DNA of 64,000 nucleotides, from assembly GCF_964204645.1 (NCBI RefSeq), contig NW_027437430.1, positions 1-64,000 of the forward strand, written 5' to 3'. Every line of letters starts with the position of its first letter. Position 1 is the stretch's first letter. The stretch is from Tubulanus polymorphus. Taxonomy: Eukaryota; Animalia; Nemertea. A program made the position numbers and the translations under genes. Positions 7-64,000 of the stretch are shown here, piece after piece. The notes beneath the pieces were generated by a model. The model did no database searches and was not told the DNA's origin. It saw only the letters and a program-made list of their open reading frames with translations.

Positions 7-50
7 GCAAAAGGTTGAAAGCCTGTTTTGGTCGATGGCGAGTGACGTCA
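7..50 (+). repeat. Left terminal inverted repeat (44 bp)
   Basis: Reverse complement of 12066-12109 except position 40 vs 12076. Confidence 0.95.
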
Positions 51-709
51 CTAGTACAAATTCCGAGCGGTTCGAATCCCACAATACGCCAAAATCACTA
101 CGGCCGCTCTGAGCGCACATCGCATTTCAACGTTGCCGTTTAATAATTGTAAAATAACTAATAATAGTTTAAGTTTTATAAGGGTTAGAAGTACATTGTA
201 TTTACTGCTAGTGTATGTATATATCATGTACGGTTGCGAGAAATCCCTGCCCTAGTTAAACAGTAAGTCCACTAAATCTTTAAATTTTAAGTTGTTTAAT
301 GAAACTATTATTGTTTTAAATTGTTAAAACTGCAAACTATGGTTGTCGAAGATGCACCTTCTTCACATCCTTTGAAATCCTAGATAGCATCGCTGTCGGC
401 AAAGACCTTCAGGTCTGTCTTCAACGGCACATCGCTTTGGAACAAGCGACTACTGTGTTATCAAATCTGAACTAGGTAAAAAAATGTTCCCCAAAAATAA
501 AGACAAGTAAACGGATTAATTTGAGGTTTGAATGTTTTTGTTTATTTGTTGGTTCAAATCGAACCCTCGTCATCCTGATCTCCATAAATCTAAGAAAAGT
601 ATTCGCACACTTAAAACAATAAAATACGAGCAATAAGCAATAACATCAGACTGGAGTAAGTAACTTTACTTAATTCACAGATACAATCCTACACAAAACA
701 ATAGCTATT

Positions 710-951
710 CAGTGGCGGATCCACCCCTCTATTTTTACCGATGTAGCCGCAAATCTATGCGTTACTGAGTAAAAACCGAATGAAATCTTTCTATTAAGTA
801 ATGCTCAGAATGCACCTGCTTGCATCTATTTTTCCAAAAAATTTTTAGGAAGGGTCTTCGCGTTATCGGTGCTTGCTCTGGAATGGCTTACAGCCATCTG
901 TTGTTGCTTTCATTTGCCCCCCCCCCCTTCAAAATGCTGGATCCGCCCCTG
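710..951. mobile_element. Small non-autonomous element (MITE, hAT-like ends) nested in the large transposon
   Basis: Ends CAGTGGCGGATCCA ... TGGATCCGCCCCTG (13/14 inverted match); related ends at ~10885-11145 and ~26206-26337; no clear TSD. Confidence 0.6.
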
Positions 952-1084
952 AGTGCAGACAAAATGATCGACAAAGACATACAGAACTCTAAAACAACAG
1001 TTAACAATTTAAGCAACGATAGACAAAACAGATAGCTGATTACTTTACAAACCTGTTGTCAGAACCTTAATTATTTTTACATGT

Positions 1085-1965
1085 ACATACAGAGGACTGT
1101 TAACAATTCAACCAATGAAATTGCGATAGAGATACAGAACATACAGCTTTAACAGTAAACAATGCAACCAATGAAATTGCGATAGAGATACAGAACATAC
1201 AGCTTTAACAGTAAACCATGCAACCAATGAATTGCGATTAACTAAGACCTACGAGCAATTATCAAGTTTGATAATTGCTCGTAGCTAAGACATACAGGAC
1301 AAACAGGACTAACTTAATTGCGATAGACATACAGGACATACAGGATTAACAGTAGACAATTCAACCAACGAATTGCGATTAACTAAGACATACAGGACTA
1401 AACCACAGGACATACAGGACTAACAGTAGACAATTCAACAACCAATGAATTGCGATTAACTAAGACATACAGGACATACAGGACTAACTTAATTGCGATA
1501 GACATACAGGACTAACAGTAAACAATGCAACCAATGAATTGCGATCGCGATCACAAAGACATACAGGACAAAACCACAGGACATACAGGACTAACAGTAG
1601 ACAATTCATTAACCAATGAATTGCGATTATTTAAGAAATACAGGACTAACTTAATTGCGATAGACATACAGGACATACAGGATTAACAGTAGACAATTCA
1701 ACCAACGAATTGCGATTAACTAAGACATACAGGACTAAACCACAGGACATACAGGACTAACAGTAGACAATTCAACAACCAATGAATTGCGATTAACTAA
1801 GACATACAGGACATACAGGACTAACTTAATTGCGATAGACATACAGGACTAACAGTAAACAATGCAACCAATGAATTGCGATCGCGATCACAAAGACATA
1901 CAGGACAAACAGGAATAAACCACAGTAAATTGCGATAAAAAAGACATACAGGACTAACTGCAGTA
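1085..1965. repeat. Subterminal complex tandem repeat array
   Basis: Many GACATACAGGAC / CAACCAATGAATTGCGAT modules; a ~270-bp block (1303-1572) is repeated at 1640-1909 (period 337). Confidence 0.92.
1242..1291. mobile_element. 36-bp palindromic insert with 7-bp TSD (probable transposon excision footprint)
   Basis: CTAAGAC | CTACGAGCAATTATCAA-GT-TTGATAATTGCTCGTAG | CTAAGAC; interrupts the repeat unit TTAACTAAGACATACAGG, which is uninterrupted in sister units. Confidence 0.8.
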
Positions 1966-2736
1966 AATATATAGGGCCTTAGGAATGCAAAATTCATTCA
2001 TTTTGTCATTTGTAAACATTCCACAACTTATTTCATTATGTCATTTCCAGTTTTCAAAGGGAATTTTCTTAACTTCAGATGCCTCGAGGACATAAACATA
2101 TAGAAAGATCTGTCCCAAAAAAATGTCAAGTGTCTTTCATAGTGCAATGGGCCCTGGTTTCCACGTTTATATATCACATATAAAATTCTACAGAAACAAT
2201 CAATGAATAAGTGAAAATTTACGAATAACAAACAAGACATTCAAGCAGTTGAGTAAGTTAAAATGGGACCAATCTATATATATTATATATGGATTATACA
2301 ATTTAATCAGGGACAGCCTTGAACCGAGGTTGATGTGTCCATACACTCTCTTCATACACTCTCTGAACATGCATGTATGTATACTGCTGCCAATTGATGA
2401 TAAGTCAAGGATGTTGAAGTTCTAGACATGGTCAGAATCATCCAGAGACATCGGCACGCATCACAATAACTGATGATTTTGCAGTAACCTGTAACATAAA
2501 AAATCAAGCGGTAATCTATTCACAAAATATATTTTCCTGAAAGAAAAAACCTGAAATAGAGCACTATAAACACCAGTGCATATACATCGCTTCTTAACCT
2601 TATATATAATCGAGTAAATATATAGGTGACTAAGTGACGGTCATTATAGGCTTCTACGTTCACCATGGGAAATGAAAATATTTCTAACGTCAGGGATTCA
2701 TTCGAAACCCGATCAATAATATTCTATACAAACTAT

Positions 2737-5700
2737 TTAGGAAATCGGGTCACAATGAAAACAAAACCACCTGATATGTTCAGGAGGAGCCTCATTGATT
2801 GGAGCACATTTCCAATGATACCATCTATGGCAATTATCACATTCAATTGAGAATGTGGACTTTTTCTTAGGATTAGCATTGCAGTTTTTGTGGCAGACAG
2901 GGCAGGTTTCAGCAACTAACCGAGAAGGGGTTTTTTCAACTTTTGATGACAAAAGATTATCTAGTTTCAATTTTGCTAGGTTTTGGAGGCCTGCATTTCC
3001 AGGTTGATCTATAAGAATTTCTAATTCTTTTTCAGAATTGGAATTATTGATTTCTGTAATAGGAGAACTGTTGAGATAATCATCTCTATTATTATAATCG
3101 ATTACAATAGATTTTTTCTTATGATGATTATGTTCAATACGAATGTGCTTTTGAAGGAATGTTTCACTTGCATATGAATTAATAACCCCATCTGCCCAAC
3201 AAATAGCACATGAGATAGGTTTCAAAGATGAATGAGAAGTGGATATGTGCCTATCTAGTTCCCTGCGACATGAACAAAGATATGGAGGATTTATTTTGTC
3301 TTTAATACAAAAGGAACAGACAATACTTTTTTCAAATAAAACAGACTTCGAGTCATTTTTAACAACTGGTATTGACTTAATATCTTTTGGTTTGGTATCT
3401 TTTGATTTTTTTGGTAAGGATGATTTATTCTGACTTAAAATATCTGCTGAAAATTCGATATCATTGCCAGGATCTGGATCAGTGGAGTCTATGGTTTCAA
3501 TTTCTGATATTTTAGCTTTTTTACCTAGTTTGATAGCAGCATTTTCAACCATAGCAGAAAAGGATACACCTCTGTTAGCAGGTCTAATTATCTTTCGCCC
3601 TCCGTGTCTTGCATTCTCAGCATCTTTAGGCATTGTAACCTTAGGACAGTAAGGGTCTATCACTTCAAGTTCAGGAAGGTTTATGGCAACCTGATTGTCC
3701 TTGATTGGACCCTCAGCACGCCTATGAGCCATATTGTGAGGTTGTCGTTTGGCAGGTCGTCCGCTTATTAACTTAATTCCACAGTGGCTTTCATTATGTA
3801 AAATACTTAGAATGTGCCCTTTCCGAGCAGCATTGATATCATTCGAGCTAGCAATGTGGGAATGATCTTTTAACTTATCAATGAGGGTAGATGAAACAGA
3901 AATATTTTGTCGAGTAAAATTGTAAGTTGGCAGAGGCTCCACAATGTGGAATTTATATGCATCAATTAAAGCCTTCGTTGTGGTTATATTGTTTTTTTGG
4001 GCAAAACAGGCAAAAAGATGTTTGCAAAAATATGGTTGTCCAATCATTATAAAAGCTTCACAAGTACATATACCTAGTTTCAAATTGATTAAATGGCAAT
4101 TACCATCTACGTATGAAAGACAATTTTCAGGAACGATTGTAATAACGTAATTGAATAAGATACGACTGGATATTGAATCTAAATTTCCTATGTACCTTCG
4201 GCATTTTTTTGAAATGTCATATGAATGTTCCTCGGATATTGATACTTTATCGGGGAATCTTTCTTCTAAAACATCAAGCTGATTGAATGTATATTGAGTA
4301 TCACCATTGAAAAAATTATCATTATCTTCTAACCTATTTAAGTTCTTTCGTGAAGAACTCTTCACAACAAACCAATTAGTTTCTTCATCATATTTTAAAA
4401 TCTCATTATTCTGTAATAAATCAAAGGCTCTTTTGCAACACTTTTCTATCTTTTCAAGGTGACGTATATTCTTAACTCGTTGGTCAAGTTGCTTAAATTG
4501 GAGATTGTTCATATTTGTCGCTTTGATCTCATCATTAAAAACATTTTCAAACAGTAATCGTACAAAAGATGATATCAGTTTATTTAGGTGTCCACTTAAG
4601 TAGACATCATCTATTTGTTTGAATTTGCGCTCAGTAATATTATCAGTTAATAGCAAAGGGTTATTTCTGTTAGATTGGTCTGACTGATAAATTGATTCAG
4701 CATTGAATGCATCAGACCAAATTTGGGAATTAAACCAATTCTTCTTTAGGTAATCAATAAATAATGTTTTTGTATCTTGCGACATAAGGTCTAAAGAAAT
4801 ATCATTCTCAATAAAACTAATAAATGAATTGGCTATATCAGTTCTAGAGGAAGCATCCCATGATCTCATAATGCATTTGAAACCAGTTTCTAGAGGCTTG
4901 CAAAATAAGCGAAGTTCTTGATTTTCATTCATGAAGCGACGAATACACTGCAGGACATGAAAATTACATAGTACTGATTTAAGATTATTGTCAGATGCTC
5001 CTTGCTTTAGACTTGCATCTTTATCATGTTGTACAAAAGGACAAAATCTAGATGTTGATGAACATGGCTTGATTCTGAAAAAACCATTGCCATCATTAAA
5101 TATATAGAATTCAGATGGATGATTACATTTTTCGTCTTTACATGGTGTATTGGCTAGAACTAACTGGATGGTAGTTGCATGAGTAGCCCCCCCTTCATCA
5201 CTACTAATTGATGCAGCAGCAATACGTCCTTCATTTTTGTTGTCTGCAAAAGTTACAAATGAAGTTTTGAATTTCCACGAATTGAAATCATGTTTCACGT
5301 CAATACCAATGACAGATTGTCCAAAGTTGGATAAATGTTCCAGAGAACGAGGATCAGAGAGAATAATGTGATAATTACGTTTGAGTGTGGCATCCCCTCG
5401 TTGAAATAAAAGGACAGATTCATAGTTACCCTCTAATAATTTTTCAGTATTTCTCCAATCAGAACTTAGAATAGGTATTTCGTCTTGAGATTTCATATGT
5501 AATTTTATCGAAGATTTATCAATATATTTCAATCTATTTGAAATTTGATCTAGGGTATGGTCATGACCGGCGCCATCATTTACATTTGATACATGAAGGT
5601 TATTGTGAGCATTGGTGGCAGAAAGAACCTTCATTGCTGTGGCTTTCATCATGACTCTATTTTCATCCCATCTATCTCTAGTAGATAAATTAGGTCGCTT

Positions 5701-8484
5701 TTTAATTTGTAAAGGAATATTGTCATGATATTGACCATTAAGTGGTTTGCTGAAGATTCTCCACTTGGATAAATCAGTACTAAATAATACAAGTTTTGTT
5801 GCCCAATAACACATAAAATGAGGGTGAATTAATTTTTTTGGCTCAAACTGCTGCCTTAACTTCACAGGACGATCACGTTTATTCTTCAGCTTATAGTTGT
5901 AACAGTTGGAACAAAGTGTTTCACCATCAGCATTTTTCCTCCATTTGTTAGACATGGTAATGGAGCAATGAATACATTGTTTATCATTTAAAACAACGTC
6001 AATTTGACATGAGGGACAATTAGTGATGTTACTGGACATATTCAACTTTGAAAGATAATATCCACATGATGATTTACAAACTGAAGACTTTGACGAACAT
6101 TTTATGAGCATTTCTGCAGCCACAAATTGAGAAGTATCCTCAACAATTGGCTCAATAAATTCAAATTTATTATCTAATCTATGGGTTTGCCAATTCTTTT
6201 TTAATGTTAAGGAAGCTTTCATCGTTGTCTGGTTACCAACAAATGAAGGCCGCACATTCTTATGCAGACGAACTGTTTTTGTAAAATCAAAAGTGAATCT
6301 ATCGAAATAATATTTTGTGTCAGCACCAGTCATTACTTCCCCATTTTCAACCCATTCATCACTAAGTGGATTCTGGTTGTTGAGGTATTTCTTGATAGTG
6401 TCAATGGCTACCTGGTCATTTGTACCTTGGTCTGTACAATGAAAACTTTTATACTTCGTCTTACTGCCAGTTGAATGAAAAGCAACTTCAAGATAATGCT
6501 TTCCTCTCCTGATGCGATGGGAGATAGTAGTTTTAGAACCATTAATATGGGAAGTTAATGGTTCAGCTGAATTTAGAGTTAATGAGGATTGAGGATTCAA
6601 AATTGAGGATGTAGATTCAGGTGTAGATTCATTATTCGAAATTGGTGTAGATTCAGGTGTAGATTTAATAGTCAAAATTGGTGCAGATTCACTATTCGAA
6701 ATTGGTGTAGATTCATTAGTCAAAATTGGTGCAGATTCACTATTCGAAATTGGTGTTGATTCAGGTGTTGATTCATTAGTCAAAATTGGTGCAGATTCAC
6801 TATTCGAAATTGGTGTTGATTCATTAGTCAAAATTGCTGCAGATTCATAATTCGAAATTGGTGTAGATTCAAGTGTTGATTCATTATTCAAAATTGGTGT
6901 AGATTTAGATTTGGCTGTAGTTAAGACTGATTTGCTTTTTTTAGGGGCAATATAAGAGTCTGACATCTTTAATTCAGAACTAGCTAGTGTATTATTTGAC
7001 TCAGTTGATCGTTTATGTCTCTGTCTGCGAGATAATCGTGATATCTTAGAGAAAGTAGTACTATTAGCAGTAGGTTGAGATGACTTTGAGAAGAGTTGAG
7101 TAATATCAATTAGATGTTTCATAAGCCAATTAATCAATATCAATCTAACAAAATCAGAATAGTTAGAAATGTTCTTAAGATAAGATAATTCATTGGGAGA
7201 TGAAAATACACTTGAAATATCCTTTTCATAATAGGTTGCAATGCAAGCACCAATTAATGTAGCAGGGCCACAGACAGATGAACATGATTGGAGTGGGTAA
7301 TAACTAGTACAATTATTACTACATACATGCACTGAATTTTCAGTAACAAAATGAGGATCATGGAGGTGGATATAAACAGGATCAGGGCAATTCAAACCTT
7401 TCAAAACAGATCTTAAATGATTTTTAAATTCCCTTGGACAATCCCATGCTAGTGTATCAGCATAACACAGTTTGTTACTTTTTGGGTAAAAAACTGCTAG
7501 TGCATAATGATTGGCAACAACATGTCCATAAGAATTTAGAAATACGAAATCGTTTTGGGTGCCAACATGCAGGAAAAAAATTAGTTTATCACAACTTATG
7601 AGTGGATTAGGACCGAATCTTTTATATAAATTTGAAACATATTTCTTAGCATCAAATGTAAGTGGCATCATAAATGCATGAATATTACAGTACTGTTCAT
7701 TTATCATAGATGCAAAAGCATTTAACACAGATCCTTCAAACCATTTTTGATTAGTCATCGTCTGAAGTTCTGATACAGATACGCTATTATTATTACCAAC
7801 TGGAAATTGTTGAGAGGGTTTTAAGGAAAAGAGCATATTTGAAAATGCTTGAATCTGTTCCCAATCGACTGAATCAGTGGGGCTTAAAGGCTTACTATTT
7901 ACCCAAAGATTCATGGCAAAAAGATCTTGTTGTTTGGTTTTAGCATAATGTAAGAAAAGAAACCTATTAATCTGATCAATAGAATAGCAGCCTGTATCGA
8001 GTCTCACATGGATATTAATGGAAGGGTCACGGACAATCCTTGACTGCATCTGTGCTTTTATGTCCTCCAACTGATTTTTGTGGGGCATAGTGGGGGCATC
8101 ATCAGCCAAATGACATGAATTAGACATGTCACAAATTCTGAATGACGTGACCTTTGATGGCATAACAGGAGGAATTTTCAAAAACTGATAGTCATTGAGG
8201 CACATTTCTGTTGGATTGTAACTAAAATTTCTTCTACATACATGTTCATCATCAGAATCATTCTCATCACTATCATCAATTATGATTGGTTCGATACCTC
8301 CACCACCTGTGATACTTAGCTGTTTTTTGTTTTCCATCCAGCTATCTTCCTGCATCTTTAATCTTTCTATCCTTTCTTTCGAACTATCTTCCTGCATCTT
8401 TTCTGCTTCCTCTATCGTTCCTTCCGAGAAATTGTCACAAGCCGCGTCCTTTCCTTCTTCCTCCATTGTCCGCCTGAAATACAC
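2737..8484 (-). CDS. Multidomain MULE-like transposase, main exon: Ulp1/SENP (C48) protease, S/T/P repeats, GATA finger, DDE core, SWIM, 2x C2H2, PHD
   Basis: 1915-codon open frame. Protease: W(F)EGSVLNAF, NHYALAV, YADT, LQSCSSVCG. GATA: C-x2-C-x17-C-x2-C plus basic tail. DDE: IGIDVKH, QHDKD, CNFH, TDNITE. SWIM: CTC-x11-CKH. PHD: CPVC...CDNCHRWYHWKC...WFCFHC. Confidence 0.9.
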   Translation of the reverse strand: MYFRRTMEEEGKDAACDNFSEGTIEEAEKMQEDSSKERIERLKMQEDSWMENKKQLSITGGGGIEPIIIDDSDENDSDDEHVCRRNFSYNPTEMCLNDYQFLKIPPVMPSKVTSFRICDMSNSCHLADDAPTMPHKNQLEDIKAQMQSRIVRDPSINIHVRLDTGCYSIDQINRFLFLHYAKTKQQDLFAMNLWVNSKPLSPTDSVDWEQIQAFSNMLFSLKPSQQFPVGNNNSVSVSELQTMTNQKWFEGSVLNAFASMINEQYCNIHAFMMPLTFDAKKYVSNLYKRFGPNPLISCDKLIFFLHVGTQNDFVFLNSYGHVVANHYALAVFYPKSNKLCYADTLAWDCPREFKNHLRSVLKGLNCPDPVYIHLHDPHFVTENSVHVCSNNCTSYYPLQSCSSVCGPATLIGACIATYYEKDISSVFSSPNELSYLKNISNYSDFVRLILINWLMKHLIDITQLFSKSSQPTANSTTFSKISRLSRRQRHKRSTESNNTLASSELKMSDSYIAPKKSKSVLTTAKSKSTPILNNESTLESTPISNYESAAILTNESTPISNSESAPILTNESTPESTPISNSESAPILTNESTPISNSESAPILTIKSTPESTPISNNESTPESTSSILNPQSSLTLNSAEPLTSHINGSKTTISHRIRRGKHYLEVAFHSTGSKTKYKSFHCTDQGTNDQVAIDTIKKYLNNQNPLSDEWVENGEVMTGADTKYYFDRFTFDFTKTVRLHKNVRPSFVGNQTTMKASLTLKKNWQTHRLDNKFEFIEPIVEDTSQFVAAEMLIKCSSKSSVCKSSCGYYLSKLNMSSNITNCPSCQIDVVLNDKQCIHCSITMSNKWRKNADGETLCSNCYNYKLKNKRDRPVKLRQQFEPKKLIHPHFMCYWATKLVLFSTDLSKWRIFSKPLNGQYHDNIPLQIKKRPNLSTRDRWDENRVMMKATAMKVLSATNAHNNLHVSNVNDGAGHDHTLDQISNRLKYIDKSSIKLHMKSQDEIPILSSDWRNTEKLLEGNYESVLLFQRGDATLKRNYHIILSDPRSLEHLSNFGQSVIGIDVKHDFNSWKFKTSFVTFADNKNEGRIAAASISSDEGGATHATTIQLVLANTPCKDEKCNHPSEFYIFNDGNGFFRIKPCSSTSRFCPFVQHDKDASLKQGASDNNLKSVLCNFHVLQCIRRFMNENQELRLFCKPLETGFKCIMRSWDASSRTDIANSFISFIENDISLDLMSQDTKTLFIDYLKKNWFNSQIWSDAFNAESIYQSDQSNRNNPLLLTDNITERKFKQIDDVYLSGHLNKLISSFVRLLFENVFNDEIKATNMNNLQFKQLDQRVKNIRHLEKIEKCCKRAFDLLQNNEILKYDEETNWFVVKSSSRKNLNRLEDNDNFFNGDTQYTFNQLDVLEERFPDKVSISEEHSYDISKKCRRYIGNLDSISSRILFNYVITIVPENCLSYVDGNCHLINLKLGICTCEAFIMIGQPYFCKHLFACFAQKNNITTTKALIDAYKFHIVEPLPTYNFTRQNISVSSTLIDKLKDHSHIASSNDINAARKGHILSILHNESHCGIKLISGRPAKRQPHNMAHRRAEGPIKDNQVAINLPELEVIDPYCPKVTMPKDAENARHGGRKIIRPANRGVSFSAMVENAAIKLGKKAKISEIETIDSTDPDPGNDIEFSADILSQNKSSLPKKSKDTKPKDIKSIPVVKNDSKSVLFEKSIVCSFCIKDKINPPYLCSCRRELDRHISTSHSSLKPISCAICWADGVINSYASETFLQKHIRIEHNHHKKKSIVIDYNNRDDYLNSSPITEINNSNSEKELEILIDQPGNAGLQNLAKLKLDNLLSSKVEKTPSRLVAETCPVCHKNCNANPKKKSTFSIECDNCHRWYHWKCAPINEAPPEHIRWFCFHCDPIS
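6600..6910 (-). repeat. Coding minisatellite (48/60-bp units) giving ESTPISNSESAPILTN repeats
   Basis: Near-identical CAAAATTGGTGCAGATTCACTATTCGAAATTGGTG units at 6673, 6721 and 6781, with more divergent flanking units; all length variation is in multiples of 3. Confidence 0.92.
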
Positions 8485-8634
8485 ATTATCAACTCACTTT
8501 TTTTAGACATATGAATAGATAGAGTATGAAATTACCCATATAGGCCTAACATAAAACATGGGTATCTCTGAGTCATTTGCATTAAGTCATTTAGATTTGT
8601 AGGTACTAAATTAATTGAATTATGTTGTACTTAC

Positions 8635-10430
8635 ATTTCAGTATGGTTTAAACTAACATGGTCTAGAAGATCTTTCCAATTGGTGAATTCAACTCCGCAA
8701 AAACATGTCGAGTCAGCAGGATCCGTCTGTGGATGAATAACCTAATGTGGAAGAGCACATTAATCTGTTTTTGCTTCAACATCTAAGCAAAAATAACAAA
8801 AATGAACCCGCATCTCGCAGAAAGGGCATCAAACTTACATGTTCCACTGACTTCCTTTTTCTGTTAAATCTTTTAGTATTGTGACAACTTCTATTGTAGC
8901 ATCCCTGAATATGAAAACAAAGCTTTACAGCATAAATCATACCAATACCAATGAATTTCTATAATTTCATTTCGAGAAACATATTACTCACGTTCTTAGT
9001 CTGATAAAAAGGAGTAAATAATTGAGGCTTTAAACAAATAGCAACACCAGCCACATCAATTTTAGTCATGTACTGGAAAAAAAAGACAGATTTGTGCATG
9101 CACAGCCTTTAGGTAATTGTGAAATAAAAGTGACCAAACTAATATTAAATCATAAGTTCTTGAGATGATATGTACCTGGTCGAATGTGAAAAAGGCTCTT
9201 TGATCTTCACAACAGAATTGTTTCCTTGTATGATGCGCAACGTCAAAACTGCTATACTGGATTGAAGGATACAAAAAACTGTTAAAATATATCTAACTTT
9301 ATAAAGATAAATCACGTACAAATCACTTAGGAAAACAACTTTACCACTATTGTTGAATCATCCCATGCTCTTGCTTGATCATCCTTCAATTTGTTTTTTG
9401 CTATCAGCTATCAATATGATTCATTAATTCAATGCAAGGATTTTGAATAAAGTGGTTTCGTATTCAAGTTATAAAAACTAATTGCAAATCATTCATTTTC
9501 TAGGATATCAATGCTAAATGATTACCTTTCGTCGATGGACTGCTCTACTTCTTTGCATCTTTTCAATCTCATATGGAAAGTATTGAGGGCACCTGATTAA
9601 GAATCATTCATTATTTCCAGTACAATCATAAAATTTATGTAGTTTGCATACCTGGTAATTGGATAAAATAATGCAATTCTACGTACATTTCATCTTCATT
9701 TTTCAATAGCAGTAGTTCCATTATCCTGTTATTTATGAACTGATTTCCCTTACGGCTGGGGTGTAACAAGTCAGTCCTAGATCACAAAATTTAGAAAAAA
9801 ACAAGTTAGTTTAAATCGCGAAAAAATGCACATAACCTACTGGGCTTATTAAAATTAAACGATTACTTACGGTGAAAGGAGATCTCTTGAGAAGTGAAAA
9901 TCAACGAACTTTACACCAAGTGTAAAGCATTCGCGGTGCAGCATTTCATTGTAATGAAATATTTTTGTGTCAGCATCGAAACTTTAAAAAAGAAAGAAAT
10001 TTAAAAATCATTACATCGATCATAAATATAGTACTTCAAGAAAAATCTATTCTTGATACTTACTCATCACATCGAGGAAAAAGAGCTGGTACAATGATGG
10101 TCCCAGTACATTTATAGAGCAACAATCGAATTAATTCAACGTGTCTTCGCAGAACAATCTCAAGCGGGACATCACGCGTCATATTATTTGTTCCAACATG
10201 GACGATTAGTTGTTCCACATTCAGCATCTTCACCTTTTTCAATTCTGTAATATACAACTAATCAGTAACCCAATGAAAATGAACAATATAAATCAGTACT
10301 GAACCGAGAAATTACCTTCCATCAATGTTTCAATGGTTCCTCCGGGGCACACGATCCTTGTCCATTCAAATAAGCCTACACCATCTAGCCCAGCATACTT
10401 TAAAATGCTGTCTGCTACGAGACCAATACG
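8635..10430 (-). CDS. Ten upstream exons encoding an SGNH/GDSL esterase domain and a C2H2-like finger, predicted to splice in frame to the transposase exon
   Basis: Exons 10430-10316, 10244-10064, 9981-9871, 9776-9687, 9592-9526, 9407-9345, 9256-9176, 9072-8992, 8904-8839, 8741-8635, all GT-AG with matching phases. SGNH blocks: LVADSI, CPGGT, HVGTNN, DLLHP. Finger: CFCGVEFTNWKDLLDHVSLNH. The last exon (phase 2) joins the acceptor at 8473 in frame. Confidence 0.78.
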
Positions 10431-10884
10431 CTACAAAAAAGATTATTTGTCAGTCTCAGGCCAATATCACAGGGAGGTGTGAGAGAGCACACTGGTTACT
10501 GTAAGACCCTACTACATGCAAAAGAAGTGACACATATATGTATATCAATGTGATAGAATTGATTGAAAAAATTGTGCATAATAGTAGCTAGTGCCCAAAA
10601 ATAGAACACAGTGTTATTGAAGTGAAAATTTCTAAAATCCTCTGAAGCGGTGCTTATTTGGTAGCTACATGGGTATTCTAATTGAATAAGCATAAAGATA
10701 AGCGTGCACACACAGTAGCCTATGCATAAACAAGGGCCAGTTTCACCTTCACCTAAAAGTCCTGCAGTGTGAAGACTAACTTGTTCACCTAAACCACCTC
10801 TACCAGGCTGTGGAAGGCCTAACATCAGGCACTAAATTAAAAGATTCCTCTAAATCAAATTATCTATAAACATCCTCTTAATTG

Positions 10885-11145
10885 CAGGCAGACTGATTCA
10901 GGGAGGGGTGCAGCCCAAAATAGGGCATACATATCAGTATCATATATAATTAAAAATCAAAAGGGCACCAGATCATCAGAAAACATAATACCTATATTTT
11001 GGAAGTAGGCCTACAGAGAACATGTTTTGGAATATAAGCTTTTTAAAAATACTTGTTGATATTTTTAATTTTTCCTTTAAATTTCATTGCGACTTAAAAG
11101 TTTTAAGGGGTGTACACCCCTGTATACTCTCCTGATCTGCCCCTG
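10885..11145. mobile_element. Degenerate MITE related to 710-951
   Basis: Starts CAGGCAGACTGATTCAGGGAGGGG and ends CCTGATCTGCCCCTG, resembling the GGATCCGCCCCTG terminus. Confidence 0.4.
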
Positions 11146-12065
11146 AATTGCCACTTAACAAAATTTCTCAGCTTAATTGTTGGCTAACTAGCTCAGTGAA
11201 ACTGGGACCAGACCTAATGCATACACCCTCAGTGGCCAGGGCCAGGATTAAACAGTTAGGCTACGTATATAAATAAAGGAATGAAAAGTACTTATCCTGA
11301 AATTGGTTAGGCTATCTATCTGCAACAAGAAATACATTTTCATTGACTCTGAATACAGGGAACTACCATTCTTCTGTTTCGAGGCCTTAAAATTTATTGT
11401 TTATTTTTTGTTGCTGGATTTGGAATGGTTGTTGGAATATTTAAGGCCTAGTAGGTGGTGACTGTGTACGGGCAACATAGGCCTATACCCAGTGGCATGG
11501 CAATGGCATGCCACTGGGTACCCACTACTGCACTATAGTATACTGCCTACGGCTACTGCGACTGGTGGTTCGGTTGGCAGAAATTACTTGTTAACATGGG
11601 GGGGGGGGGAGGGGGGAAGTAAGCGTGGATGAAGACAAATTAATTTAGCCGAGTAAGTAGCAAGCAAGTAAAGTAGTGGCAGTACAGTAGGCCTAGCGAC
11701 AATGTGAGTGTGGTGGTAACGTGGCCGTGGTGGCAATAACAAGACTCCAAAACTGGCAAAAGCCAAAATTAAAAAGCCCTGCCGCCGCGCGGTCGCGACG
11801 CCTCGCCTGCACCACCGTGTACGATCCTCGCGGCGTTCACCAGTGTTACCCAGTGAGTTTTTTATAATCTTGCAATCTACCTCTTTTTTCAAACCAATAT
11901 TCCCACCAACTGGTCCGGAGACAAGCTTAACACGTTCGGAAAACATGATTCACAATCTTTTAATCAACAGCCAGCAAGAATACACTTGACAGAAAATTCA
12001 AATTCAGCGGTTAACCGTTAAAAGTGAGTTGTTTAGCTGTGGGAGTAACAAAAAGGCGATCTTGA

Positions 12066-12109
12066 TGACGTCACTAGCCATCGACCAAAACAGGCTTTCA
12101 ACCTTTTGC
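12066..12109 (-). repeat. Right terminal inverted repeat (44 bp)
   Basis: TGACGTCACTAGCCATCGACCAAAACAGGCTTTCAACCTTTTGC, inverted copy of 7-50. Confidence 0.95.
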
Positions 12110-12569
12110 CGCAAGCCGAGTGATGTTCCTCCTTAAAACAGTCTATATTTACACCTTTAATCACCAATGATCGTTAAGGTGATTATTGCAATTTAATCCT
12201 GTTCCATTGTTCTATATTTAGATGTTTGTTTTTACGTTCATCCATCCGTGAAATAAACACAATACATACAAAACTGCCGGCATGTAAATCGAATATATCA
12301 ATCAAAATTAAATCAAGTCCATGATGTTTTATTGCTAAATGTAAATAAACCTTTTATTCGAATGCAACAGTTTTTTTATGTCGGTTTTTTATGAAATAAG
12401 TATTCAAGACACACACACATATGTGATTATACAATTTGATTAATATTGGTTGACAGTTTTCTGATTGATAATTCCAACAACCGTCTTTGAATTTTAAGAG
12501 GCCTCTACTATAAGTGTCATTCAGTATGTTCTGTTTGTTTATTTCAGTAGTCAGTATAGATAGAGATCT

Positions 12570-24913: not shown

Positions 24914-35202
<10,289 letters not shown>

Positions 35203-39535: not shown

Positions 39536-42500
39536 TTATTGCGGCATAGGGATAGGAACAGTTTGATGGACGTCTGTACCAGCGCTTTGAGTCGCTAGGA
39601 GGCGTTGTCGTTGACGTTGTTTCTTGAGAAGGGATCTTTGTCCGCGCATGCATGAACTTTCTTCGTGTTTGTACAGGTAGCTCTTCAAGGCGAATGCTTT
39701 TCCACATCGACCACAAGTGAACGGTTTCAGTGAGGAATGAGTCTGAATATGCGCCCGCAAATTTGATTTATCGGCGAAAGATTTCGAGCAGATATTACAA
39801 GCGAACGGTTTTTCGCCCGTATGCGTTCTTATATGTCCCTGTAACAGCCACGGTCGACTGAAATTCTTTCCGCAGTAGGGGCATTTACACCCCTGAGCAT
39901 GGGTTCGTACATGCATACTGTAAGCTGGCATTGATACGTAGACCTTTTCGCAATGTGGACATTTTCTGGCCTTCTTGTCGTCGAGACTGCGGTGAGTTTG
40001 TCGGTGGCGAGCCAGGTTACTGGAAGTGCTGTAAGATTTTTCACACAAGTCGCACGGAAACGTTTCACCGCTGTCTGATGGAATAGTTGACTCGGGTGAT
40101 GTGGGAGGCGTACAGTCGATACTGAGATCACTGCTACTGTCACCTATTACTGGCACGTTGTGAAATTCCAGATGTTGTTCATCTAAACCAATAAGACTCT
40201 GGTGAATGTGGTCGTTCGCTCTTGTTGTCTTCTGATCTTTGGCCAATAATGTTTCCATTCTGTAGTCGAAACCGGAATGGGGTACATTTTGTTGCGGGAG
40301 AGTTGACGAGAAGAACCAATTGGTGTTGTATGGTGGAGGCATCGGAATGATATGTGGAATGCGAGTTGTCACTGGATGTTGATTATTTGGTGACAGGCAT
40401 TGTGTTGATGTTCGTACGATGGAACTTTCTTTGGTGGCGTAGTTCGATAAATCTAAACCGAGATGTAAAATTGCCCGGGCTGCAAAACTTCTACTCTCCG
40501 CTTCATGGGCTGGTAGATGTTTCTCATATATAACCTGGTCGTCGGGCGAAGGGGTGATTCTTTCGTACTTAATTTCATCTCTGGTCCACTCTTTATCACC
40601 TAAAAAGAAAATTGAAAAACATGTATGTATAGATATGTAAAAGCTCTTAAAAAGTGCATTAGCATACACTGGCTTCATAGTTTCTTCCGTGAGTTCCCTA
40701 GTTGTTCACGAGGCAACCGTTCTAACAAGATTCCCGAGAAATTCTTTCATGGTCCAATGGAATTTGTTGCGAATCTGCCTTTGTTCACAACTATAACTGG
40801 ATTCTTGATGGATTCTCCGACTTTGTTATCGTTTACTGAATTCGATTGCTTGTCAAAAAGGAAGAATAACAAAGAGCGCTTGTCGGAGTCTGGTCTCCAT
40901 GTTTCTGGACGATTTCGCTAGTTTTTTGATAGCGGTTATCGTAACCTAGATAAAACATATTACTGAGTCATTTCCTGAGGATGATTTGCTTTTTGAGACA
41001 ACATCGATACCGTCAACCTCAAACGGCCTAGTTTTACTGATATTACAACCAGGTGAAAGTAAATCCCTTTTAGATTATTTTTGGTCCGATATAAGTGAGG
41101 ATTCTAAACACAATTTGAAGAGCAACGCGGAACATAGGTCTCCAGAAGTGTTTTAACATAACATTTTCAACAAAACTTTTAACAAAACTTTTTCATCAAA
41201 TTTGATTAATTGAATTAATTTTAATCAAAGTTAATCTTACAGATTGAGAATAAACAATTTTCAAAGAGACCAATGTTTTTGCGAAATTAACTCTAAAATT
41301 AGTTTTTCAAGATGTGTTTTTTCATGAAGAAGTTCTCCATGTTCAGTCAACAACGCTCTAATCAGTATCGGCTAGCGGGGCAGGTCGATCGCCTGGACAC
41401 CCGGTTCCGAACGCTAACGGCGACTGTCTCCGAGACCGAAGGTCCGAGCGCACTAGCACACACCTAAGAAATTAGGTGAAGTTGGGTTTTTTTCTGTTTT
41501 CTTCAGCCGGATGATGAAAACCGATGCTTTCAGTTATTGCATAACAAACTGCTAGTAATAGACATACCGATCTATTCGTGTGGTTTTTTTCAGACGATCA
41601 ATCCCAATACAATGGATCTTAAAAAATCATGAAACCAGCATTATTTATGTATATCATCAAAAATACATGTTTATCATATATCTCATTTGATGCAACGATT
41701 GAAAATAATACTCATGGATTCTAGACACATATATTCTTGTTTGTGTAAAATCCGAGTCGACGGTGAAATAAATAATAGTTCTGGATGTAAATAAAGTAGA
41801 TGTAATTGACGAGTGAAGACAGTTGCATAACGGCGATGAGTGATGAATAAGCCTGATGTCGGTCTGAGTCCCGTCTGTCATCATTTACGCGTCAGTTGCC
41901 TGTCAATGTCAACCTCGCTGATCAACCTTATCTGGTGCTGACTGATGTGGTGCTGACCAACACCCTCGATCAATCAGCTCCGTCTGGCCAGTTTTTGTTA
42001 CAAAACCTTGCTATCAGATTATGTATAGTTACTTCAGCTATGGGGATAAGATTCTTCGGCGAATATCCCAGAAAGAGACACAAGATTCCGGTAACAAAAA
42101 AATGGGGGAATTACGTTACGAGGTCAAACTGACTGCACAGTTGCTTTCTCGTGTTACCGCTCCATAGGTAACAACTATTTTTTTGGGATAATAAATCATA
42201 TTCTACGATATAAACAACCGACTTTAGAGCCACCTGGCTTGGAAACGAAGGTAGTTACACACAAAAAAAAACCAGTCAGCTATGCACCTTTTTTGCTAGA
42301 TAATATCCCTAACGTCCATGGATCGACCTCGGAATTGAGTGGACAAAATATACGACGTTCCGAGGGAATGATATCATTTTCTATCAATGGATTTTATCTT
42401 AATGTGCGTCTGGGTTAAACGTGGTACTAAACGTGTTCTAAGTCCAGACGTTTTTAAAAACGTGTAAAGTTTATGCACGATCGGCAGTGATGAGTCACTT

Positions 42501-60689: not shown

Positions 60690-63600
60690 CTATTCTGTAA
60701 GAACTTCATTAATCAGCTGTGAATCCTCGCCTAGTATCGAACACAACTCTTTCAAACGGTCTTGCATTTTAGGCATCCCGGACAGGGCAGTTTCCAGGTG
60801 AACTTTCTCCTCTTCAAGAGATACACGCGCAGCGCAATCAAACTGAACAAATTTCCAGCCACCTTCTCCATCAAACTGTAATAAGTGGCTGTGAAATTTC
60901 CTGAAACATACGAAACAGAATTTAGCGCTATGAATTCAACCTTCTCAATAATGGGTACAAAATACCACCCGTACTCACCATAACGATGGACGATGTGTTA
61001 TTGTAAGGAGAATAATTCCATTATCTTTTGCCGTTTGGTAAATTTTACTTTCGACGTCAATAGATACAGCACTTGTACATTCATCTAACAGGGCGAATCT
61101 AGGCCTGAAATGTGATACATACCGGTATCTATAGTCTACAATCTTTAGGTAGCGTGTACATCTATCATATCTCTACTTACTTGTGGTAGAAAAGTCGAGC
61201 CATTCCCATTCGCTGTTTTTCACCACCAGACAAAACATCTTTCCAATCACTCACCGCATCCCAACCTATCGATACATGCAAATATGTGCGTGTAAAATTT
61301 CATAAATCTCGATAAAACATAAAACAAAAGAAAAACTTTCGGTTTGAAACATTGACAATAGTGATTGATGCTTACCCCCTTCTCTATGAACGATATATTG
61401 TAAATTGACTATATCCAGAATGTTTTCCAAGTCGGAATCATTGTAACCTTTGCTGCGCATATCTTCTAATGTATCTGGATACATCACTTGGTCACGTAGA
61501 CTTCCGATAGACATGTACGGTCTGAAAACAAAAACCAAAACTTTCATTTGTACTCGTAAAATACCCTTCTCGAAGATCAGATTTTAAAGGGCAGGTTACC
61601 TCTGAGGTATATAGAACATTCGATATGGTGGTGGTTTATATAGATGTCCATGGTACACTGGCCACAATCCACTCAATATTCGAAATAGTGAACTTTTACC
61701 ACAACCATTCGGACCAGTAATCAATAAATGCATCCCTGATCTAACCTAGAATTAAGTGAGCTAACGTACAACACCTAGTCAACAGCATATTCAGGAAAAT
61801 ATATGTTTTGTACAAAAAATGCTAGTTATTCAAGTCAGGATAGAGCTATATACCTAATAAAACAATGTTGAAATTAATTTACCTCAAAGCTGAGACTATT
61901 GACCACTATATCTCCATTTGGAGTAATGATGGGTACATCTTCTAATACAATGTCTGTCTCTGTGTCTGTCACTTTTCCTGTGAAGAAAGAATTATCAAAC
62001 GTGCGCCATCTATCATGAATTGTCAAAATACATATTCAGTGGTACTCACCCCTCATAACTAGAGAGCTTTCAATCTTATCCTGTGATGTATTGTTTTTAC
62101 CGTTGGTTACAGTAGAGCGAACGTACTTCCCTTCTTTTACATCTTCAAATACGTTGAATAGATCAGCGACACGACTTGTATACCCGGCTAATTCAGTCAC
62201 CTGAACAATCATTTAAAAAATCACCACTCATAAATTTATAATCCAAGGCCATTATTCGTTTAGATAAATATCAATATTTACTGACATCTTTGTAAGAAGA
62301 AATGATGCGTTCAACCGCATCAGCTGAATTTATTAGTAAATTTCGAGCAGTTGTGAATGCCTTTGTTCGTTCGCTCACTCCGCCATCAGGATCATCATCT
62401 ACGTATGAACCTACAATAAAATTCACACAGTTTATAGGCCTAATCCCGTTTCAAGATCCTGGAAAAAACTGTGGGCCTACGCCTAAGAACTCCCAATTTT
62501 CAGTTTTCAACTATAAACCATTTTCATCAAAATTAAGTCAAAAACCGAAAATTCAGAGTTCATTATAAATTCATTCATTATTCATTATTATTATTATCAT
62601 TATCATTATTATCATTAGATTCCAAAATCATTTTGATGGATGGGTTTGACACTTGTGTCCTTATTTGTAACGCATTGCGAATATCTGCCTCTTCTAGTAA
62701 CAAAGTTACACACCATCAGCTTTAACAGCTTTAGCAGTAATTACAGGTACTGCAATTATCATCATTCCAGCTGTACTCCAGATATACTTCATCAGAAACT
62801 GCTCCAACATTATGTACCAAAGTTTCTTCGAAAATATCAAATTCATTTGTTCTGCCAGTAATTTGAAACCTTTAAACAACAAATTCATTTCAACCTGGAA
62901 CAAAATTAAATCGTTAACAGTAAGAATAATCATTAATGTTCTTTCACTAAATGATCGCAAGCGATGAGGTTTGTTAGGTTTTACCTCATGTCCAGCATAA
63001 AAGGCAATCTCTTCAGCATTAGCGATGATCCTCGAATGTAAATAACGCAGATATCCTTTTCTATTTGCTTCTTCAGCGACCAGTTTACCAAATGTTGGAG
63101 AAACAAATTTCAGTATTTGTCCAGTACATAAGACGACAGAAGTAGCTATAACTGCTGGTATTTTAGAACTAGCCCCACGACTACGCGCTAATTGAAACAA
63201 GGCAAAGTTAATAAGAGCTACATCTAATATGGGTTTTGTTAGATGGGAATACAAATGAGACAGAGTTGAGGTAAACATAGTAATATCCTCTGTAAGACAT
63301 TGATCAACATTGGCTAAACGTCCATCTAAATTGCTAACTCTATAATACGTCTGCTCTTTAAAATAAGCTCTATACGCATGTTTTACTAGTTTTGAACGTA
63401 AAGCAAGCGCTAGTTTGTTTTCAAAGAAGCGTATAAGACTGTTGATAAATGTTGCAGGAACAGCAATAAGTAACCATTTCATAACTTCAATAGCAAACTT
63501 CATCACATTTTTCTGGACAATAGCTTTCACAATTCTACCGTCCAATTTGGCAACGTAAATGGACAGAAAGGTGCGGGTAATTAATGAGGTGGTGTGGAGA

Positions 63601-63956
63601 ACCAGGATCCCAAATTCCTTTGACAGCGGTCCAGGTATCATTATCTTAATCAATTTCTTCAGCTGCTTTAAGAATAATTTATTGACAGCTGGTGAATTCT
63701 TCTTTTGTAGATTATTGGAAATAATTTGACAGTCATTTTTGTTTTCCGTTCGTTTGACGTTGTTTTGAATCGACGGCGAAGATGAAGATGTGATCTGATG
63801 ATTGTCGATGTCATCGCGTGACTTCCGGGTTCCAGACAGCAGGATCGGATATAGCTTTTTAACGCTGTATACCGCAAATATCGCTACCGCAGCACCCCCA
63901 GCCAGCTTCCCACAAGCGGCTTTATTTTTCTGACTCATTTGAAGCAGTCTAGACAT
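60690..63956 (-). CDS. ABCD2: Peroxisomal ABC half-transporter ABCD1/ABCD2-like; multi-exon
   Basis: [25 protein letters not shown] motif [13 protein letters not shown], Walker [63 protein letters not shown]; first in-frame ATG at 63956 (5' end near window edge); ABCD1 vs ABCD2 not separable in invertebrates. Confidence 0.9.
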
Positions 63957-64000
63957 CTTTGGAAGGGCAGAAGGACACAATTTCAAACATAATTTGACAG

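Follow-up and report, generated by a model that had tools for sequence, protein, structure and literature searches.

Accessory domains have been described on the transposases of animal Mutator elements. Rehavkus elements, which Repbase has filed under MuDR (PMC4455052), present a 9-bp target site duplication (TSD), terminal inverted repeats (TIRs) of 26-400 bp, one open reading frame (ORF), a PHD finger and a minisatellite before the 3' TIR, in elements of 4.9-18.5 kb (Dupeyron et al., 2019; PMC6446971). Ulp1 was, in turn, reported in Mutator transposons of hydra and lancelet, where the 'Ulp1 and PHD domains' of Mutator transposases were aligned (Bao, Kapitonov & Jurka, 2010; PMC2836005). Considered here is an element found at the start of contig C13 of the nemertean Tubulanus polymorphus (assembly of 268 Mb in 77 contigs). 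The window, namely the whole stretch of DNA analyzed, comprises the first 64 kb of this contig (64,000 nucleotides), with the element spanning window positions 7-12109 (12,103 bp). Very probably, this is an autonomous, transcribed and very recently active cut-and-paste transposon of the Mutator (Mutator-like element, MULE) superfamily with Rehavkus-like anatomy.

The ends of the element and the repeat lying close to one of them are as follows.

7..50: TIR at the gene's 3' end, 44 nt, inverted-repeat match
12066..12109: TIR at the gene's 5' end, 44 nt, complementary to 7-50 at 43 of 44 positions (98%)
1102..1882: subterminal minisatellite between the stop codon and the 3' TIR, with units of 56, 77 and 166-171 bp and a copy number that varies among element copies

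A model's earlier reading of the window, made from the sequence alone (the sequence-only reading), had noted the 44-bp TIRs and their single mismatch. Because each terminus is found about 30 times across the assembly, in most cases with 97-100% identity over 124-160 nt, the pair is not the product of chance. The ends can be paired into some 28 copies of 2.1-17.3 kb, 11 of these pairs being 11.6-12.6 kb or longer, such that the search for further TIR copies proposed in that reading revealed something other than a single-copy host gene. A perfect 9-bp TSD, differing from locus to locus, was seen in 12 of the 13 paired copies for which both flanks were in hand.

Signs of recent movement were evident in several groups of copies. 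The full 1,918-codon frame is open in at least seven copies, while an eighth is open for 1,770 codons. Across 8-12 kb, the identity of young copies to the window copy is 99.8-99.99%, with one of them being mismatched at just one position in 9,558 bp. Overall identity is lower (96-98%) in a few copies, which nonetheless show less than 2% divergence at coding sites. Four copies make up a size class of approximately 4.77-4.79 kb. In addition, a subfamily of deletion derivatives was found at four loci.

C11:12983883-12990747: deletion derivative, 6,864-6,865 bp class
C3:6469429-6476293: deletion derivative, 6,864-6,865 bp class
C3:19918258-19925121: deletion derivative, 6,864-6,865 bp class
C6:22713138-22718867: deletion derivative, 5,730 bp

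The same diagnostic protein matches were obtained in all four derivatives, which retain the SGNH exons and the SWIM-C2H2-PHD tail (an open 299-codon frame) and from which the catalytic core is missing. The left flanks differ at the three loci compared. As a derivative lacking the core was nonetheless amplified at different loci, it must have been mobilized in trans, and its truncated product might interfere with or regulate transposition. A second sub-lineage is marked by a nested miniature inverted-repeat transposable element (MITE) of 543 bp, with TIRs of about 60 bp and a TA target duplication in the style of Tc1/mariner, found in four element copies at different loci at a site equivalent to window 11443/11444.

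C8:10697912-10710557: copy carrying the nested MITE
C5:22757431-22769770: copy carrying the nested MITE
C1:1591498-1603913: copy carrying the nested MITE
C4:7370739-7378309: copy carrying the nested MITE

This site is empty in the window copy, and RNA contigs also run into the MITE. Given that the same insertion is common to four loci, the sub-lineage in question went on transposing after the MITE had been inserted. Indeed, the multiple copies, open frames, near-identity of young copies and mobilized derivatives bear out the earlier description of the element as intact and recently active. They also bear on the possibility that the locus is instead a domesticated host gene family or a segmental duplication, as could be imagined from NCBI having annotated an ordinary protein-coding locus and from crab homologues that look domesticated (see below). 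The TIRs, the locus-specific TSDs, the dispersed copies, the deletion derivatives with the same ends and the co-propagated nested MITE all speak against this explanation, which the TSD and copy data refute and which retains practically no probability.

Two further observations concern the ends. The inner ends of the TIRs (window 43-50 and 12066-12073) hold the palindrome TGACGTCA, identical to a cAMP response element (CRE)/ATF-type site, and the same 11-mer as in this region was found upstream of limpet ORFs (E 0.48), which may be due to chance. A tRNA-like GGTTCGAATCC motif near the left end of the element was considered and found not to be a tRNA.

The gene borne by the element is transcribed and spliced. 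Its exons, other than those encoding the SGNH module (listed below), are given here.

2737..8472, minus strand: giant last exon, 1,918 codons, stop codon at 2737-2739, 5' boundary taken from the RNA joint 8472|8634
8634..8739, minus strand: exon of an N-terminal C2H2-like finger, defined by RNA joints; weak Pfam zf-C2H2 match (E 0.04); a crab homologue aligns from here onward
8837-8903, 8991-9072, 9176-9256, 9345-9407 and 9526-9590, minus strand: five small coding exons, defined by RNA joints, with no recognized domain
10753..10831, minus strand: 5' exon, with an ATG at 10825 that is out of the SGNH frame at the RNA-supported junction
11292..12065, minus strand: 5' non-coding exon(s) and presumed promoter region, RNA joint 10831|11292

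In agreement with the earlier reading of one uninterrupted minus-strand gene, the frame at 2737-8484 is open for 1,915-1,918 codons, and RNA contigs (run X4, produced in the study that gave the assembly) join the small 5' exons to the giant exon across 12 introns lying between 8473 and 11291, all of which are GT..AG on the minus strand. None of the splice joints of the gene was found in DNA runs X1 and X2. Run X5, labelled 'RNA?', is without any sequence of the element locus and hence uninformative on expression. Exon-by-exon translation yielded the NCBI model XP_074661724 (P0145, 2,196 amino acids), that locus being named 'uncharacterized protein LOC141914437' by NCBI, with isoforms of 2,196 (isoform X1, P0145) and 1,995 (isoform X2, P0001) amino acids. 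As such, the length of at least about 2230 residues first predicted exceeds that of the RNA-supported model, a product of approximately 2,250 residues requiring splicing to an alternative acceptor further downstream. The term 'polyprotein', also applied at that stage, is not retained, as nothing shows proteolytic processing. The searches described in the following relied on single-exon translations and stored NCBI models (P0145, P0150 and P0001) rather than on a newly joined spliced protein.

Assignment of the element to the Mutator superfamily draws on the catalytic core and the zinc finger that follows it.

4471..5463, minus strand: DDE catalytic core, with D1 at 5299-5301, D2 at 5023-5025, CxxH Cys at 4966-4968 and His at 4957-4959, and Glu at 4630-4632
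4018..4068, minus strand: SWIM zinc finger, CxCx11CxH (P0145 C1754, C1756, C1768 and H1770), on a beta-beta-alpha element of the model

In P0145, the core residues correspond to D1343, D1435 and E1566, with LCNFH being found 20 residues after D1435 and the glutamate lying within TDNITERKF. An AlphaFold2 (AF2) model of the core (pLDDT 85.7; pTM 0.84) presented an RNase H-like fold with an all-alpha insertion, in which the catalytic residues occupy the secondary-structure elements where they would be expected: D1343 is in the first strand and D1435 just past the fourth, C1454 and H1457 open the next helix, and the helix after the insertion begins with E1566. When this model was compared with known structures using VIA-align, ISCth4 was ranked first (Z 12.2, 11.5 and 10.2), ahead of Hermes (9.9) and retroviral integrases (about 9). 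ISCth4 is an IS256-family transposase, with IS256 being regarded as the bacterial relative of Mutator. The RNase H-like fold called for in the sequence-only reading was thus recovered. HHalign comparison of a 51-sequence profile of the family with a profile of seven canonical MULEs of the same genome (96.5%; E 7e-10) paired D1, D2, the CxFH motif and the N-x-T-E-R region. Likewise, all 10 of the nearest structure clusters in the ESM-Atlas were PF10551 families, with or without SWIM, FAR1 or ZSWIM1-3 (TM 0.47-0.53 over 320-390 residues). For the SWIM finger, support is offered by the PF04434 domain of these atlas neighbors and by UniRef naming a crab homologue 'SWIM-type domain-containing'. Taken together, a 9-bp TSD (8-11 bp in the superfamily), TIRs, a MULE/IS256-type core fold, profile homology, a CxxH motif 20 residues after the second Asp and a SWIM finger were all found, in keeping with the Mutator relationship first proposed; only the Pfam PF10551 threshold was not reached.

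Other DDE superfamilies able to carry SWIM or Ulp1, namely Zisupton/KDZ, hAT and Ginger, were weighed against the same data, given that Hermes, a hAT transposase, is among the top PDB fold matches and that Ginger1 carries Ulp1 and PHD. However, ISCth4 outranks Hermes, the atlas neighbors are all MULEs, the HHalign match is to MULEs, no integrase-type GPY/F or YPYY features are present and the TSD is 9 bp long, with that of Zisupton being 8 bp. An origin in one of these superfamilies is accordingly highly improbable, being ruled out by the TSD, copy and fold evidence.

Assignment of the element as a recently active, autonomous Mutator transposon has to be weighed against several points that count in the other direction, to which the RNA junction upstream of the SGNH module, described below, should be added. 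First, the Pfam MULE, SWIM and Peptidase_C48 models do not match the protein, whether the ORF or pieces of it were scanned, and a genome-wide PF10551 scan that detected 75 canonical MULE sites found none in copies of this element. These domains were, therefore, established by profile-profile and fold comparison. Second, the TSD of the window copy is not verifiable, as just 6 nt (TGTCGA, positions 1-6) precede the element at the contig start. These six mismatch the last six of the expected 9-bp duplicate, as given by the right flank at 12110-12118 (CGCAAGCCG), which could stem from copies having recombined or from the assembly having broken at a repeat. Third, domain-by-domain ratios of non-synonymous to synonymous polymorphism (pN/pS) in older and younger copies had no power, with 0-17 substitutions per domain, such that selection on the accessory domains is not measurable within Tubulanus because substitutions are too few. 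Fourth, neither excision, an empty site nor an insertion polymorphism was observed directly. Finally, the roles considered below for the PHD, Ulp1 and GATA modules are ones that we infer, domain functions being predicted throughout rather than biochemically assigned.

Apart from the core and SWIM finger, the protein carries a series of accessory modules. The modules encoded by the giant exon are listed here, in the order of the protein.

7093..8079, minus strand: Ulp1/SENP-like (clan CE) cysteine protease domain, with His at 7507-7509, Asp at 7456-7458, Gln at 7288-7290 and Cys at 7270-7272
6620..6905, minus strand: Ser/Thr/Pro-rich linker, a coding tandem repeat with periods of 24, 48, 60 and 108 bp
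5998..6510, minus strand: conserved pre-GATA block just N-terminal of the GATA finger, kept in all giant homologues
5848..5982, minus strand: GATA-type zinc finger, ORF residues 829-873
3130..3318, minus strand: two C2H2-like zinc fingers, ORF residues 1717-1779; Cys/His pattern kept in limpet, priapulid, stomatopod and crab; no Pfam match
2752..2904, minus strand: PHD finger, ORF residues 1855-1905; Pfam PF00628 24.2 bits against a cutoff of 24

The domain order originally predicted, i.e., SGNH, C2H2, Ulp1, Ser/Thr/Pro linker, GATA, DDE core, SWIM, two C2H2-like fingers and PHD, was confirmed, with each domain being backed by Pfam, profile, fold or a conserved pattern. In the protease domain, P0145 residues H607, D624 (+17), Q680 and C686 (+6) appear in the order H-D-Q-C and with Ulp1-like spacing, the catalytic spacing of yeast Ulp1 serving for comparison. 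Alignment of 17 homologous segments revealed an invariant His and, 17 residues on, an invariant Asp, followed by YPxQxCxxxCG, in which the Gln is found six residues before the Cys; the crab homologues, as well as P0071 and P0086, no longer have the catalytic Cys. An AF2 model of the domain (pLDDT 79) returned, as the top 30 or so PDB matches in Foldseek, only Ulp1, SENP1/2/3/5 or NEDP1 (Ulp1 2hkp/1euv, E 2e-8). The homologue P0010 (ENA, 2,251 amino acids) contains two tandem Ulp1-like domains, at residues 90-435 and 654-963.

The pre-GATA block gave neither a Pfam nor an ESM-Atlas match. The GATA finger that follows is a CX2CX17-18CX2C treble-clef to which GATA-1 and GATA-3 chains match at E 7e-7. 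The Pfam GATA model scores 17.7 bits in this protein (cutoff 26.8) and 26.1-29.8 bits in homologues, with one of these being over the cutoff. The PHD finger, matched by the PHD fingers of TAF3 and BPTF (E 8e-7), is conserved in the limpet, priapulid and ENA/JGI homologues.

The N-terminal region encodes a further module, assigned as an SGNH/GDSL esterase.

9685-9775, 9870-9981 and 10064-10244, minus strand: SGNH/GDSL esterase exons, defined by RNA joints and PF13472, with block V (DLLHP) in the first and block III (GTNN) in the last
10316..10430, minus strand: SGNH Ser exon, with block I (ADS, putative nucleophile Ser) and block II (PGGT); transcribed; acceptor at 10430 or 16 nt further in

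The Pfam model PF13472 (Lipase_GDSL_2) matches residues 1-140 of P0145 with 35.0 bits (cutoff 32.9; E 2.6e-8), and the module has GDSL families as its closest neighbors in the ESM-Atlas (score 0.96). All four blocks (ADS, PGGT, GTNN and DLLHP) are encoded, and the signature residues S, G, N and H are intact in the genome. At the same time, the sole RNA junction visible here, 10753|10430, leaves the Ser exon upstream of the start codon, with in-frame stops just upstream. With this junction, the long ORF begins at the Met of ...TLME, after block II, as in isoform X1, and the ATG at 10825 would open no more than a short upstream ORF; isoform X2 begins at MTKIDV in exon 8991-9072, downstream of the whole module. 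A canonical acceptor 16 nt downstream would put the ATG at 10825 in frame with ADS...PGGT. This acceptor is absent from the RNA contig, although NCBI uses it for the paralogue P0150. As such, catalytic competence of the SGNH module would depend on an alternative 3' splice site.

It is, accordingly, quite possible, if somewhat short of an even chance, that the SGNH exons represent a 5' leader, captured or degenerate, instead of a functional esterase, and that the protein, starting after blocks I and II (X1) or after the entire module (X2), contains only one hydrolase. The stops upstream of the Ser and the first in-frame Met past block II at the RNA junction, the start of X2 and the lack of the module in any homologue outside Tubulanus are in line with such an interpretation. 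Against it stand the four intact signature residues, the acceptor that restores an ATG-initiated frame through the first two blocks, and the retention of the module in older copies of the element (86-95% identity), together with a relative of the module elsewhere in the genome that is 49-59% identical and has similar exon breaks. Of the 'two hydrolases' proposed earlier, both are thus encoded, yet the Ser exon of one lies upstream of the start codon in the only junction seen.

Outside Tubulanus, the SGNH module was not found among the homologues, and a word-indexed search returned Tubulanus paralogues only; the module would thus be a lineage-specific addition. In a sequence search of the PDB, the best match was the OSK domain of Oskar (E 0.03), and no significant link to the esterases of long interspersed nuclear elements (LINEs) was obtained. 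Within the genome, SGNH-like sequences sharing 31-59% identity with the module of the element are found at C7:9333841-9334270 and C4:9937169-9937456. That on C7 has exon breaks similar to those of the element. A core of 41% identity is found on the same strand as the C4 sequence, which is 17 kb upstream of it. Either older relatives that bear an SGNH module or the origin of the module itself may be represented here.

To place the element among its relatives, HMMER was run over 1.84 billion representative sequences, yielding 141 sequences related to the core, with E-values under 1e-30 for 18. Giant relatives (1,200-2,270 amino acids; 32-44% core identity) come from the limpet Patella caerulea (several paralogues), the stomatopod Oratosquilla oratoria, Scylla and Portunus crabs, and ENA/JGI assemblies, with shorter ones being found in Palaemon, Halocaridina, the sea spider Nymphon and Priapulus. 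In the public records, every homologue carries the label 'uncharacterized' or 'hypothetical'. Conservation across the homologues covers the Ulp1 block as well as the whole stretch running from the pre-GATA block through the tail, and the core signature G-x-D-x-K-x-D-F, QHDK, LCNFH and T-[DN]-N-x-TERKF is common to the nemertean, mollusc, crustacean, sea-spider and priapulid proteins.

In the limpet, the homologue is a single-exon gene with a minisatellite directly behind it, a layout as in the Tubulanus element.

L073:13594-17263: limpet minisatellite
L074:13603-17937: limpet minisatellite

These arrays are approximately 3.7-4.3 kb long and built of 139-bp units, each of which holds the 22-nt palindrome TTAAAGGTGTTAACACCTTTAA. 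No TIRs of the limpet elements were found within the 8-kb flanks, and their 3' ends may extend past the DNA examined. The Tubulanus genome itself contains diverged sister lineages of 41-58% core identity at several places, one of which is given here.

C6:15724736-15725935: site of a diverged sister lineage

In one such lineage (52% core identity), a frame of 1,787 codons is uninterrupted, making it a possible second autonomous family.

The crab proteins P0011 and P0157-P0160 (Scylla paramamosain and Portunus trituberculatus) have lost D2 (QHENK), the CxxH motif (LYNFN) and the Ulp1 Cys, and the stomatopod protein P0003 (Oratosquilla oratoria) is without D2 (QHGKN). The Scylla and Portunus proteins nonetheless share one 90%-identity cluster. 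Loss of catalytic residues together with such conservation across two genera suggests domestication, and the crab homologues are, therefore, possibly domesticated transposase genes.

Every element-level hallmark of Rehavkus is present in Tubulanus, i.e., the 9-bp TSD, the TIRs, one very long ORF, the PHD finger, the minisatellite before the 3' TIR, the giant size and an invertebrate host, and the fusion of Ulp1 and PHD to a metazoan Mutator transposase, as in hydra and lancelet MuDR, has been on record since 2010 (PMC2836005). The element could thus be an ordinary member of a catalogued family, be it Rehavkus of Repbase (Rehavkus-1_HR, -1_TC, -3_TC and others) or an animal MuDR with Ulp1 and PHD, of which only the host species is new. 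Such an assignment is possible, if on the less likely side. What argues against it begins with the core. In the six printed Rehavkus cores, D1 is found in D-A/S-T-G-S, C/DxAH lies about 45 residues after D2 and E is found in S/N-x-x-V/I-E; compared by eye only, all catalytic motifs and the D2-CxxH spacing (about 45 versus 20 residues) differ from those of the Tubulanus clade. The signature strings of that clade are absent from the supplementary alignments of PMC6446971. Published hosts of Rehavkus are insects and a leech, whereas the Tubulanus clade is seen in a nemertean, molluscs, crustaceans, a sea spider and a priapulid. Moreover, the open descriptions of Rehavkus make no mention of GATA, SGNH or N-terminal Ulp1, neither GATA nor SGNH is reported for the hydra and lancelet elements (PMC2836005), and the searchable literature yielded no report in which a DNA transposase is associated with either a GATA finger or an SGNH esterase. 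The labels carried by the public homologues, listed above, also point away from a catalogued family.

Several other systems share some of these features. Plant KI-MULEs and VANDAL elements with Kaonashi similarly combine a Mutator element with an Ulp1-like protease, for which an anti-silencing role has been discussed (PMC13317346); in plants, however, the Ulp1 is encoded apart from the transposase, by a VANC derivative carried by non-TIR MULEs, whereas in Tubulanus it is N-terminal in the transposase of a TIR element. Canonical MULEs (PF10551; FAR1/FHY3 and ZSWIM1-3) and IS256 (ISCth4) share the fold, the D, D, CxxH and E residues, the last in an N-x-x-E-R context, and a C-terminal SWIM finger. 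Relative to canonical MULEs, the Tubulanus core is too diverged for Pfam and has a Cys/His-rich insertion between D1 and D2, and the protein is 2-3 times longer and bears five extra module types. Ginger1 transposases are also fused to Ulp1 (or OTU), with or without PHD (PMC2836005), yet their core is of the Gypsy-integrase type and their accessory domains are C-terminal, as opposed to the MULE-type core and N-terminal Ulp1 seen here. Finally, SGNH/GDSL esterases are known from ORF1 of CR1, L2 and RTEX LINEs (some with PHD), and from long terminal repeat (LTR) and Penelope-like retroelements (PMC3905857; PMC5408684). All of these hosts are retroelements, whereas that in Tubulanus is a DNA transposon.

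The claim made at the outset that the combination of domains is unlike that of any described family therefore does not stand as worded. Rehavkus-type anatomy (PMC6446971) and the presence of Ulp1 and PHD on animal Mutator transposases (PMC2836005) are already known, and the novelty is smaller than first claimed. Of the findings that the sequence-only reading had named as fatal to it (a described family of the same architecture, a core lacking the RNase H-like fold or a single-copy host gene), none was fully obtained. What is apparently undescribed, judging from the searchable literature and from a comparison by eye with the six printed Rehavkus cores, is the GATA finger, the SGNH fusion and the core signature of the clade. 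We tentatively consider, with rather less than even confidence, that the element is the founding and still-active member of an undescribed deep Mutator clade in marine protostomes (nemertean, mollusc, crustacean, pycnogonid and priapulid). Such a clade would have a fixed architecture of C2H2, N-terminal Ulp1, pre-GATA block, GATA, MULE core, SWIM, two C2H2-like fingers, PHD and 3' minisatellite, to which SGNH was added in Tubulanus.

In terms of mechanism, a MULE-type DDE gene lies in a TIR element with 9-bp TSDs that moved very recently and that mobilizes deleted derivatives. The transposase would bind the TIRs and subterminal repeats via its zinc-finger modules (GATA, C2H2 and perhaps the pre-GATA block) and would excise and reinsert the element through 9-bp staggered cuts in the target, while the PHD finger could tether or target the complex to chromatin. 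The Ulp1-like domain, in which H-D-Q-C is intact in the mobile lineages, is predicted to strip SUMO or another ubiquitin-like modifier. It might act on host factors of silencing or repair, or else on the transposase, and transposition would be favored both ways. Similar ideas on Ulp1 were raised by Bao et al. (2010; PMC2836005) and in work on plant KI-MULEs (PMC13317346). An esterase of LINE ORF1 that is related to SGNH has been linked to lipids and membranes (PMC3905857).

Beyond the element, three other sequences were observed in the window.

39536-40678, minus strand: multi-C2H2 zinc-finger ORF
62706-63986, minus strand: exon of an ABC transporter, ABC_membrane_2 domain, E 5e-91
28425-29270, plus strand: ORF with weak ANF-receptor/OpuAC similarity

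Intact and demonstrably young autonomous Mutator elements are rare in animals. With intact copies, natural non-autonomous derivatives and transcripts all being available, the Tubulanus element is, therefore, a candidate for a transposition assay and perhaps for development as a lophotrochozoan genetic tool. Ubiquitin-like-modifier proteases were reportedly suggested (Hoen, 2006; Bao, 2010) to act in transposition or in the evasion of silencing, and the fusion of a SUMO-protease-like domain and a PHD finger, kept across phyla, offers a concrete system in which such ideas could be tested. The SGNH module extends esterase capture, reported in searchable papers for retroelements only, to a DNA transposon. 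Should the element indeed represent an undescribed clade, a DNA transposon would here be seen with an esterase module for the first time, and the protease and reader modules would constitute a built-in device for anti-silencing or chromatin targeting.

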